Shown piece by piece: positions 37,351 through 41,209 of a stretch of 64,000 nt of DNA. Within the stretch, counting starts at the first letter, position 1; the number at the start of each line of letters is the position of its first letter. The stretch covers positions 62,001 through 126,000 of the forward strand of contig CBFFRP010000362.1 of assembly GCA_965644295.1 (NCBI GenBank), in the 5' to 3' direction. Source of the stretch: Paraphysomonas bandaiensis (taxonomy: Eukaryota > Protista > Chrysophyceae). A program made the translations under genes and the position numbers. Below the pieces are notes generated by a model. It did no database searches. It worked only from the letters and a program-made list of their open reading frames with translations, and was not told where the DNA came from.

Positions 37351-37636
37351 TATAGTGTTTGGTTTATGAACGAGAGAATGCAAATAAATTAACGTCACTA
37401 GAGGGATTCTACTCTCGAATAATTCATAATTAATACAATAATATTAATGAAATCTAACTTATAAACTAACATACTAATATAATAATATATTATCCCGTCT
37501 ATCTCTAGTGTCCTGCGTAATCAACCACTGGAAACAAAGGGATAGATAATACAATGCAATTCTAGTTATTCGATCTCTACCCTATACTCGTATATGCTAT
37601 GAACCCCACATCTAGATATACACACAAACACATATG

Positions 37637-38162
37637 CATACATACATACATACATACATACATACATACATACATACATACATACATACATACATACATA
37701 CATACATACATACATACATACATACATACATACATACATACATACATACATACATACATACATACATACATACATACATACATACATACATACATACATA
37801 CATACATACATACATACATACATACATACATACATACATACATACATACATACATACATACATACATACATACATACATACATACATACATACATACATA
37901 CATACATACATACATACATACATACATACATACATACATACATACATACATACATACATACATACATACATACATACATACATACATACATACATACATA
38001 CATACATACATACATACATACATACATACATACATACATACATACATACATACATACATACATACATACATACATACATACATACATACATACATACATA
38101 CATACATACATACATACATACATACATACATACATACATACATACATACATACATACATACA
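37637..38162. repeat. (CATA)n microsatellite, about 130 units
   Basis: Perfect run between two divergently transcribed genes. Confidence 0.99.
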
Positions 38163-38411
38163 ATCATCGTCAGGTGTACAACGGAGTGGGGACAGAGATA
38201 CTGAAGGTAGCCAATCACAGCTTGGAGGGACCCTCAGCCAAGAGTTGTGGTGTGGGGTGCGGTGGAATGGCTCTCTGCTCACTGCACCCTTCAGAGAATC
38301 CGTTAAACCTATTGGCGGATATTAACCATATAATATATCCTACACCAGTGATAGTCTACCCCTGCATAACTATCAATCAAATAGCACTCATATAAACTAG
38401 TGGAGTAGGAG

Positions 38412-40644
38412 ATGACGGAAGCAGTGGAGTCCTCTGATTTGATCACATGCACTGAATGTGGAGAAGAATTTCGGTCTAAAAACAGATTATTTATACATCT
38501 AGAAACTCATGGAGTGGAGAGGGAATCCGTTCATGCGACTCGACCAGGAAAGATTGTATTATTAGTCGGTTGGCTGAGTGAGTCACACGATGATGATGAA
38601 TGGGCGATAGATGGACACATTAACCCAACATGGAAAAACACGACAGATCGAATTGAGTCTGAATTATTTAAAGCTATTGAAATGGTTGATGGACCTGGTG
38701 ATGATTCACGAGATACTGATGATGTGAAAGGATTTTCTCGTGCGAGTGGATGTGCTCAACGTGCGTCGCATATGCTTCAGTCAGAGGCTTCATGTCATGG
38801 TGGGTGCGACGTCTTATGCTTCCAACTGAAGAAAAAAAGTAAACCGAAGAATCAAACATGGGTCGAAGCAGTTAACAGCAAACTACCTGCAGATATTCAT
38901 GTTATGGAGGTGTACAACCTTCCGCAAGCGTGTTGTGACTTGCATGCCGAGTCGCTTTGTTCTCAACGCCGATATGAATATGTCCTCCCTCTCCAGGCAC
39001 TTTTCCCTCCTGATGAACCTATTGCTGATATTCCCCTACGAATAGGTGGTATTAAGACTGAGCCTAATCGAGAGCGTTCCTGGTGTGTTATGGATAACGC
39101 TTTTCCAAGAAACACGCCCTCAGGCAAGGCACGAATTGAAAATTTTCGCAAATTGAAAGTAATTCTGAAAAAATTTGGTGGTAAGAAATGCATGCATAAC
39201 ATGATGACGGGTGGGGGATCTCCAGACGATGCCCCATGCAAGCGTCGCGTTGATCGATTTTATCATAAGGAACTTCTCCTGGTAGACGGCACGGTGCCGA
39301 ACTTGTCGATTTCCTCAGTAGTTACAGACAGTTCAGGAACGAGCGAAGAATGGGCTGTGTTCAGTATATCTGGAAATGCATTCCTTAAGGGCCAGGCACG
39401 GAAGATGGTAGGATTAGCTATTAGCGTATTAAGGGGATGGCTGCCGATGTCATTCATGGATGTAGCGATGGACGACGCACGAGTTGTTAAAGTCCCTTCT
39501 GCACCGGGTTGCGGATTGTATTTGGCGGAGTGTCAATTTGCCAAGTGGGAAACTAAACATGGTTTCTACATCGACCCGAGAAGAATTGAAGGTATATAAA
39601 TTGTAATTGCAATATGCGTCAAGTGTATATCCTTCCCTGTATTCAGCATTGCTGTCTGTATATTATGAATACTGATTTATCAGCCAATTTCGTCATATAT
39701 TTTCTGTACTGCAGGAGCTGATTCTAGTCGTATTGAGGACTGGATACGTATTGTGCAACACCGAGCTATTCAGCAAATGAAAGAACGCGATTGGATGGCG
39801 AGTATGAAAGAGCAGTGCCAGATGTGTCTCCTGCAATATGAAACGGAACAGTCGTTGCTTAATAGAACGCCTGAAAGTTTGCGGACATCGTTGAGAAGTT
39901 GTAGGACGGGAATTCCTGCTACATGCAGTATAGAGGTACGAGGTGCGTACGAACGGGTACTTAATTTGCTGCGGGCTGCAGATTCTTCAGGAAGTTGGCC
40001 TGCGTCGTCACAGGTACGGTTAGTCAAGTACATTAAGTGTATTTTATAAATATGTATTGCTGACCTTATCATCGCATGTAGGCCCGACAGAAGGTGATTA
40101 CGGAAAGTTCACTTGTCGAGAAAGGAAGCAGAGGAGGAACCTTTAGTGTGGGTTTCCTGCCAGCCCCACTATCTCAACCCAAAGGAAACGAGCTTTTCCC
40201 TGGTATGTTTATCCTATTCTCAATGCATATCAAATTGAAATGGCACATGCATAGAAAAATGCGATCGTTTGTCTGTTTTTGCCCTTATAGTACACTGTAG
40301 AGTTGCTGCTAGCATGCTTTCAACTTGAAAAGATATTGTATCCGTCTCGGACACCGTCGTCTACTATTGCTGTAAATAGACACGCACAGTTTCGACCACA
40401 TCGCGACACTGGCGCTGGAAGTGGTCAAACTACCAGTTTAATTGTTGCACTCGGAGACTTCGCCGGAGGCGAGTTGATGGTAGAGTGTAAAGCTAATGAT
40501 ATACGCTACAGCCCCGTGGAGATGGACGGATGGGGGCAGAGACATTGGACACTTCCCTTTGAAGGTGAACGATATAGTTTAGTATGGTTCACACCGCTGG
40601 GTGTAAAAGTACCGGATGATTTATGGTGGCTGAAAGATATATAG
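38412..40644 (+). CDS. C2H2 zinc finger + TruA/Pus1-like domain + C-terminal 2OG-Fe(II) oxygenase-like domain, 4 exons
   Basis: CTECGEEFRSKNRLFIHLETH zinc finger. TruA-like motifs NSKLPADIHV, CSQRRYEYVLP, GNAFLKGQARKMVG and APGCGLYL. Oxygenase motifs PHRD...GDFAGGEL...RHWTLPFEGERYSLVWF. Introns at about 39592-39714, 40014-40081 and 40203-40300. Confidence 0.82.
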
Positions 40645-41209
40645 GACAAGTTTGCTAGTGATATAATTTTAGCTAATATATAACAATTGCTGTGTGTTGC
40701 AGTTCAACGTTGATCGACATAGTTCAATATTGCAGATGTTTTAAAATATAATATAGGCATTGGAGTTCGCAAGTGATTGACAGTGTAGCACTCACGACAT
40801 AAGCGTTGTGACGCATGATACATCATACTGCTGTTATATGTTAGACCAAGCCGTTCAGTCCAATAACTGTCAACATACCCCACGTTCATATACATCCTTA
40901 TATTTCCGTAAAGGCAAAATGCCAATCATCGACTTTCAATTTAATTCTTATATTACTTATAGACCTTCACAGAAAAGATTTTAAGTATTTACAATATTTT
41001 TTATATTAATATCTTAAATACTCGAAACAGAGGATAGAAAAAAAGTGAAAACTGAAAATTAATATAGAAGGCTCAATTAATTCTATGTTACTTATTAAAA
41101 TTTTCGAAAATCGAATTGACATATATAGACCTGAGGAAGGAGGAAGTAAGTACGTAAGTACTAACTCACAACTCACATTATACTCAACTGATGTATTCAT
41201 CAGTAGCAA

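Follow-up and report, generated by a model that had tools for sequence, protein, structure and literature searches.

A putative three-module RNA-modification protein of Paraphysomonas bandaiensis combines a zinc finger, a diverged Pus1-type domain and a predicted 2-oxoglutarate/Fe(II) dioxygenase

A stretch of 64,000 nucleotides from the chrysophyte Paraphysomonas bandaiensis (contig CBFFRP010000362.1, positions 62,001 to 126,000; 'the window' in what follows, with positions counted from its first letter unless another contig is named) carries on its forward strand a gene for a protein of three modules, i.e. a probable C2H2 zinc finger, a domain with the fold of the pseudouridine synthases Pus1 and TruA, and a C-terminal domain that, on the strength of a structural model, can with confidence be assigned to the 2-oxoglutarate (2OG)/Fe(II) dioxygenases and is predicted to be active as such. 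Across a large family of relatives the putative catalytic set of the pseudouridine synthase is, in the alignments, only loosely kept, in sharp contrast to the near-invariant ligands of the oxygenase. We put at roughly one in two the probability that the oxygenase is the catalytic part of this protein and that the Pus1-like module, by recognizing RNA or holding a nucleotide, targets or flips the nucleotide to be modified.

Gene structure and transcript

The gene consists of four exons separated by introns that, in a scripted check, all proved to be of the GT..AG type, just as the exon structure implied by the initial annotation of this DNA had it. The coding sequence (CDS) of 1944 nt, or 647 codons, specifies a product of 647 amino acids (aa). 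The exons and the transcript are as follows.

38412..39591, + strand: exon 1 CDS, with the ATG at 38412 and ending in phase 1; zinc finger and Pus1/TruA-like domain
39715..40013, + strand: exon 2, encoding a helical linker and the first helix of the dioxygenase domain; conserved among orthologues
40082..40202, + strand: exon 3, encoding the N-terminal strands of the dioxygenase (GGTFSVGFLP...KGNELFP)
40301..40644, + strand: exon 4, encoding the core double-stranded beta-helix and ending in a TAG stop codon
38349..40771, + strand: spliced transcript contig with 5' untranslated region, four exons and 3' untranslated region; the longest contig, from run X1

The 2134-nt contig from run X1 aligns to the window in four blocks (38349-39589, 39713-40011, 40080-40201 and 40300-40771) with 0 mismatches, the joints skipping 123, 68 and 98 bases with GT..AG in each case. 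Single contigs with identical joints and no mismatches were obtained from all three runs of the source organism (X1, X2 and X3), which are transcriptome-like runs from three studies whose status as RNA is a guess, one of them being flagged as "probably DNA". Identical joints, together with three single-nucleotide polymorphisms, were also present in a polyA marine metatranscriptome (X4). Because single contigs span the exons with all three introns removed, the zinc finger, the Pus1-like part and the oxygenase are encoded by one spliced, polyadenylated mRNA, and the initial annotation's caveat that the exons might belong to separate transcripts has lost its ground.

A near-perfect (ATAC)n microsatellite (37618-38162; 136 copies, 98% matches) precedes the gene; roughly 250 bp separate its end from the start codon, and roughly 190 bp from the 5' end of the transcript contig.

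A conserved dioxygenase domain with TET/JBP-like structure

For sequence searches the exons were taken one at a time, and the full-length orthologue P0009 (608 aa) served as a proxy for all work on whole domains. The dioxygenase domain and its motifs, with conservation counted in an alignment of 67 relatives, are placed as follows.

39930..40641, + strand: 2OG/Fe(II) dioxygenase domain, about residues 466-647, with two introns within; assigned from the model and conserved motifs
40399..40407, + strand: HxD iron ligands His567 and Asp569 (HRD); His in 67/67 and Asp in 66/67 relatives
40543..40545, + strand: distal iron-ligand His615 (RHW); His in 67/67 relatives
40570..40578, + strand: RxS 2-oxoglutarate-binding motif, Arg624 and Ser626 (RYS); Arg in 66/67 relatives, Ser in 63/67 and Thr in 3

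The HRD, the distal His in RHW and the RxS to which the initial annotation had pointed are thus all found in exon 4, at columns kept in 63 to 67 of the 67 relatives, with the triad itself being conserved throughout (67/67, 66/67 and 67/67). The AlphaFold2 (AF2) model of the orthologous domain (P0009, residues 428-608) is a double-stranded beta-helix with a pLDDT (predicted local distance difference test) of 92.6. In a Foldseek search it had 85 matches at E<=1e-3 to dioxygenases of the Protein Data Bank (PDB), with the fungal TET enzyme CcTet coming first, followed by ALKBH6 and AlkB, and with 4j25 also being matched. A second structural aligner returned 47 chains at Z>=8, led by NgTET1 (Z 12.0; root-mean-square deviation 2.4 Å) and TET2 (Z 11.6), and placed PHD at Z 11.3, the Pseudomonas prolyl hydroxylase P4H at Z 10.8 and the ABH8 oxygenase domain at Z 8.1.

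At the sequence level, Tet_JBP was the commonest sub-threshold Pfam match (22 of 68 members, best E 5.9e-4), with 2OG-FeII_Oxy_3 matched by 4/68. Exon 4 of the window gene itself reached 11 bits against Tet_JBP (PF12851), whose cut-off is 34.9. Exon 2 had no match in the Pfam scan, nor had the C-terminal domain of P0009, and scans of Pfam, NCBIfam and PHROGs with the oxygenase exons and the orthologue domain yielded no family above threshold. Phmmer and profile searches of PDB sequences gave chance matches only (antibody light chains, an arabinofuranosidase), and the AlkB clade (2OG-FeII_Oxy_2) was matched as a family in neither Pfam nor PDB sequences, its likeness being one of fold.

In the ESM Atlas the oxygenase has as neighbours a Tet_JBP cluster, small hypothetical proteins from phages and giant viruses, and a viral cluster with a fusion to TAGT (PF20691), which we take to be the TET/JBP-associated glycosyltransferase; one neighbour cluster weakly matches 2OG-FeII_Oxy_3. 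A tblastn search of 50,697 phage genomes found nothing, and the link to viral proteins is one of features and structure, not of sequence. Overall, the model would make the C-terminal domain TET/JBP-like with moderate confidence, which is not the same as demonstrated membership in PF12851.

A Pus1/TruA fold with an altered catalytic loop

The N-terminal part of the protein, entirely encoded by exon 1, contains the following features.

38448..38510, + strand: probable C2H2 zinc finger, residues 13-33, CX2CX12HX3H; the Cys/His pattern is kept in orthologues
38544..39581, + strand: Pus1/TruA-fold domain, about residues 45-390; assigned from PF01416, TIGR00071, the AF2 model and Foldseek
38736..38810, + strand: degenerate catalytic loop, residues 109-133; QSEASCH in place of RTDxGVH, with a 3-residue insertion before the motif
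38973..38975, + strand: Tyr188, aligned as the equivalent of the active-site Tyr118 of TruA (RRYEY vs RRYRY); present in the window protein
39399..39401, + strand: Arg330, in GQARKMVG aligned with HQIRKMVG of human PUS1; present in the window protein

The zinc finger stays below threshold against Pfam zf-C2H2_4 (E 0.0015; 19.5 bits, with a cut-off of 27) and is matched by phmmer to a PRDM9 finger at E 7.7e-7. That the flanking motifs of TruA are present, as initially annotated, is borne out by the exon 1 product (393 aa), which exceeds the PF01416 cut-off of 23.3 with 35.4 bits (E 1.6e-8), matches TIGR00071 at E 7.6e-13 (48.7 bits, below the TruA equivalog cut-off of 142.85) and is matched by phmmer to human PUS1, yeast Pus1 and E. 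coli TruA, all of solved structure. An AF2 model of the domain built from 25 relatives (pLDDT 77.6) has PUS1, Pus1, TruA and PUS3 as its top 20 Foldseek matches, with human PUS1 (4nz7) being the best at E 3.3e-20, so that in terms of the model the N-terminal part clearly has a Pus1/TruA fold. Examined domain by domain, as the initial annotation had proposed, the protein thus divides into a Pus1/TruA-like N-terminal part and a well-modelled C-terminal dioxygenase.

The initial annotation had further described the RTDxGVHA motif as replaced by an Asp-free stretch. This stretch, SRASGCAQRASHMLQSEASCHG, i.e. residues 109-130 of the exon 1 product (38736-38801), indeed contains zero Asp; it does, however, contain an acid at the decisive place. 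In the phmmer and MAFFT alignments alike, SEASCHG is paired with TDAGVHG, by which Glu125 (38784-38786) falls on Asp60 of TruA and the catalytic Asp of Pus1, and Gln123 stands where the Arg of the RTD would be. Because Glu125 aligns exactly to the catalytic Asp, the change in the loop is best read, as far as an alignment can tell, as a replacement of Asp by Glu combined with the loss of the motif Arg, and not as the plain absence of an acid. Asp133 is a second acid, specific to the fusion family. The likely equivalence of Arg330 to TruA Arg205 we infer from the conserved motif rather than from a direct alignment.

The genome also contains canonical members of the TruA family, each with its RTD intact.

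C200:11362-12358: Pus1-type paralogue, locus L004, motif ARTDRGVHA
C178:73123-73638: Pus1-type paralogue, loci L006/L008, motif SRTDKGVHA
C143:196907-197113: TruA-type paralogue, locus L001, motif SRTDRGVHA
C59:74055-74459: Pus3-type paralogue, locus L002, motif GRTDKGVSA

Because these four paralogues with an intact RTD exist elsewhere in the genome, the fused gene is a supernumerary, diverged paralogue and not the Pus1 of the cell. That it might be the sole Pus1 of the genome is ruled out by the canonical Pus1 copies on C200 and C178.

Spread, architecture and residue conservation of the family

An exhaustive HMMER search with the oxygenase domain of P0009 as query found 1174 cluster representatives at E<=1e-3, including 273 at E<=1e-30, with identities of 50-70%; at E<=1e-5, 636 clusters (at 90% identity) match. 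Among the 150 best oxygenase-matched representatives, the finger/Pus1-like part is present in 105, with the remainder mostly being fragments. Members with a named source are found in diatoms (Pseudo-nitzschia, Thalassiosira, Cyclotella, Nitzschia and Mayamaea), the brown alga Choristocarpus, the dinoflagellates Polarella and Symbiodinium, and Picozoa, and are labelled in databases as hypothetical, unnamed or automatically annotated TruA. A member of this eukaryotic family in a metagenome bin labelled as an archaeon (P0196; NCBI, 722 aa) is probably a mis-binned eukaryotic contig.

Across 147 members, the position of the catalytic Asp is occupied by Glu in 77, by Asp in 61 and by other residues in 9, i.e. 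a carboxylate is present in 138/147 (94%); 143 members carry the second acid, at position 133. By contrast, 17 of the 147 retain the Arg of the RTD (a loss in 88%), 71 the Tyr and 85 the second Arg. In a tree of the Pus domains, which was used for the history of the acid since the oxygenase-domain tree held too few Asp-type members, both well-supported clades containing the window gene have Glu throughout; diatom members retain an Asp in a non-canonical QD..TGAITE context, and the acid was lost in several lineages, with well-supported branches forcing at least 5-6 changes between the states Glu, Asp and none. Thus, the motif proposed to be degenerate is degenerate across a large family, but the proposed loss of the Asp is not general, since diatoms keep it and 94% of the 147 members keep a carboxylate. 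The further step from a missing Asp to an inactive enzyme does not stand as it was put: retention of the Asp in orthologues, or a Glu taking its place and making pseudouridine, had been named as what would speak against it, and part of this is what we see, with Glu being fixed in the clade of the window gene. As far as the sequences can tell, the Pus1-like part seems to be kept as a fold with a conserved putative cleft acid and without the canonical catalytic set.

A sole member, P0085, was seen to combine a canonical SRTDRGLH loop with the same oxygenase; it sits on a long branch and its placement is unsure. Going by its sequence, P0085 may be what remains of an ancestral fusion in which the synthase was active.

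Relatives carry a variety of extra domains, including R3H, a RanBP2-type finger, ankyrin repeats and a C-terminal aldo-keto reductase. R3H domains and RanBP2-type fingers bind single-stranded nucleic acids. The aldo-keto reductase (PF00248) follows the oxygenase in P0047, P0136, P0153, P0192-P0195 and P0203-P0204 (from Symbiodinium natans and other eukaryotes), with P0136 (1689 aa) being composed of R3H, Pus-like, oxygenase and aldo-keto reductase parts, and these fusions hint at a carbonyl as the product of the oxygenase in those lineages. In P0132, a RanBP2-type zinc ribbon, the oxygenase and ankyrin repeats occur together without a Pus-like part; the oxygenase domain therefore appears to be a mobile module that has been joined to different binding domains.

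Proposed mechanism and alternative explanations

An important question is what such a protein would do. We favour a three-module RNA-modification protein, in which the conserved catalysis would be that of the C-terminal TET/JBP-like 2OG/Fe(II) dioxygenase, whereas the C2H2 finger and the diverged Pus1-type domain would supply RNA recognition and probably hold a flipped-out pyrimidine. The Pus1-type domain would no longer be a canonical pseudouridine synthase, and presumably would form no pseudouridine, and the dioxygenase would oxidize the RNA so bound at one of its bases, the most plausible site being the C5 substituent of a pyrimidine, as in its closest structural relatives. RNA as the substrate is suggested by analogy to the layout of ALKBH8 and by the RNA-binding partner domains of relatives; target nucleotide and chemistry we likewise infer, with the TET/JBP-like structure of the model suggesting pyrimidine C5 oxidation. 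In support of this reading, the best structural matches of the oxygenase (CcTet, NgTET1, TET2, FTO and AlkB) act on nucleic acid. Furthermore, the Foldseek matches include PDB 7r9g, which we take to be a mutationally inactivated yeast Pus1 crystallized with RNA.

Several observations weigh against this proposal. FTO, PHD, AlkB and P4H, at Z 11.3-10.5, come within about 1 Z of the TET enzymes, and the sequence searches with the oxygenase domain reached no characterized oxygenase. Moreover, the carboxylate is found at the catalytic position in nearly all members, and the window protein keeps both Tyr188 and Arg330, a pattern of retention that, judged from sequence, is not what a dead site left to decay freely would show. 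With the carboxylate conserved, a 'catalytically dead' Pus1-like domain is not proven.

It is possible, though we are doubtful, that the enzyme is bifunctional, i.e. that Glu125 (Asp in diatoms) still isomerizes uridine and that the dioxygenase acts second, on that nucleotide or one next to it, which would amount to a two-step pathway in one polypeptide comparable to the methyltransferase and hydroxylase of ALKBH8. The conserved carboxylate with its Glu fixed around the window gene and the retained Tyr188 and Arg330 fit such a scheme, as does P0085, whose canonical loop fused to the same oxygenase suggests an active synthase in the ancestral fusion. Real synthases, however, have an invariant Asp, whereas this position has switched repeatedly on the tree, most members have lost the RTD Arg, and about half have lost the Tyr or the second Arg. 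We know of no natural pseudouridine synthase that uses a catalytic Glu, and the D60E variant of TruA, in work by Huang et al. from 1998, was reportedly inactive yet tRNA-binding. Unlikely in our estimation is a scenario in which both domains are catalytic and jointly install an oxidized uridine or pseudouridine derivative (e.g. a hydroxylated pseudouridine or one of the 5-hydroxymethyluridine type) in the tRNA or rRNA of ochrophyte algae, dinoflagellates and Picozoa, with a Glu/Asp-variant site of altered glycosidic chemistry and, in some lineages, the fused aldo-keto reductase processing a carbonyl product.

The oxygenase could also act on protein or on DNA. An enzyme of the prolyl-hydroxylase type that hydroxylates proteins of the translation apparatus (compare OGFOD1/Tpa1, or Pseudomonas P4H acting on EF-Tu), with the Pus1-like part docking onto the ribosome or tRNA, would account for the nearly TET-like Z-scores of PHD and P4H, for 4j25 among the Foldseek matches and for the weak matches to 2OG-FeII_Oxy_3 in a few members and one Atlas cluster; we consider it quite unlikely, with Tet_JBP being matched five times as often as Oxy_3, TET enzymes leading both structural searches and a viral neighbour cluster being fused to what is presumably the TET/JBP-associated glycosyltransferase. 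Still more improbable seems a DNA base oxygenase working in the manner of TET/JBP, which would be targeted by the C2H2 finger and would reuse the Pus-like fold for flipping DNA-uracil, thymine or 5-methylcytosine. The nearest structural relatives, TET and JBP-type enzymes, do work mainly on DNA and DNA binding is frequent among C2H2 fingers, but this protein has a single finger only, the Pus1/TruA fold is known with RNA substrates alone, and the partner domains of relatives, R3H and the RanBP2 finger, point to single-stranded RNA. Finally, most database gene calls of relatives end within the third intron, as might be expected if two adjacent genes had been wrongly joined here or if the gene were a pseudogene; yet four independent assemblies each gave one contig with three introns removed in frame, and the full-length P0009 and hundreds of relatives with a single open reading frame share the domain order, which leaves an artefact with next to no probability. 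A gene-fusion artefact in particular is ruled out by the spliced contigs.

Relation to known systems

With the Pus1/TruA synthases the window protein shares the fold, the C-terminal half represented by PF01416, the motifs GxSFLxxQxRKMVG and RxYEYxLP, Tyr188 and Arg330. It differs from them by QSEASCH with its 3-residue insertion, by Glu for Asp, by the lost Arg and by the acid at 133, as well as by the added N-terminal C2H2 finger and C-terminal dioxygenase and by being encoded in addition to two canonical Pus1 genes. TruA/Pus1-fold proteins are also found among the structural matches as parts of an RNA-protein assembly, i.e. the assembly intermediate of the trypanosome mitoribosomal small subunit (6sga chains FB/FC, 9hny). 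These trypanosome subunits are not known to have catalytic activity; unlike the window protein, they are stand-alone assembly factors without an oxygenase, and the likeness is known at the level of the fold.

With TET/JBP enzymes (NgTET1, TET2 and CcTet; PF12851), its top structural matches, the oxygenase has in common the double-stranded beta-helix, HxD..H and a downstream RxS, which in the window protein lies about 9 residues past the distal His, as does the Arg that binds the C5-carboxylate of 2OG in the superfamily. In contrast to these enzymes it is minimal (about 175 aa), has no Cys-rich insert, never reaches the Pfam cut-off and has as its partner an RNA-enzyme fold instead of DNA-binding modules. 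ALKBH8, which consists of an RNA-recognition motif, an AlkB-type oxygenase and a Trm9-type methyltransferase and acts on the wobble uridine of tRNA, follows the same logic in combining an RNA-binding module, the fold of an RNA-modification enzyme and a 2OG oxygenase in one polypeptide. It belongs, however, to the AlkB clade, of which the window oxygenase has no sequence signal, and its methyltransferase is active, whereas the Pus1-like domain is probably degenerate.

Iyer, Tahiliani, Rao and Aravind are said to have described in 2009 (Cell Cycle 8:1698) an algal family of 2OG/Fe(II) dioxygenases (2OGFeDO) with strikingly diverse architectures and a predicted role in RNA modification. This description fits the diversity of Pus-like, R3H, RanBP2 finger, ankyrin and aldo-keto reductase parts found here. 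Our literature search, which covered the papers of one searchable library, turned up none describing a Pus-dioxygenase fusion, and to our knowledge the fusion family has not been characterized experimentally. PMC2938197 confirms that RNA-modifying members were predicted in Iyer et al. 2009. An earlier in silico listing of the Pus1-oxygenase architecture in Iyer et al. 2009 is thus possible.

Biological implications

The family is strongly conserved, with 50-70% identity in its oxygenase, among ecologically dominant phytoplankton of the sea, where it is also expressed. It points to an as yet undescribed oxidative modification of RNA, or of nucleic acid, in these lineages, and the automatic annotation of its members as 'tRNA pseudouridine(38-40) synthase' is probably wrong. 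Furthermore, the family represents a natural experiment in what becomes of a pseudouridine-synthase fold after the replacement of its Asp by Glu and the loss of the motif Arg.

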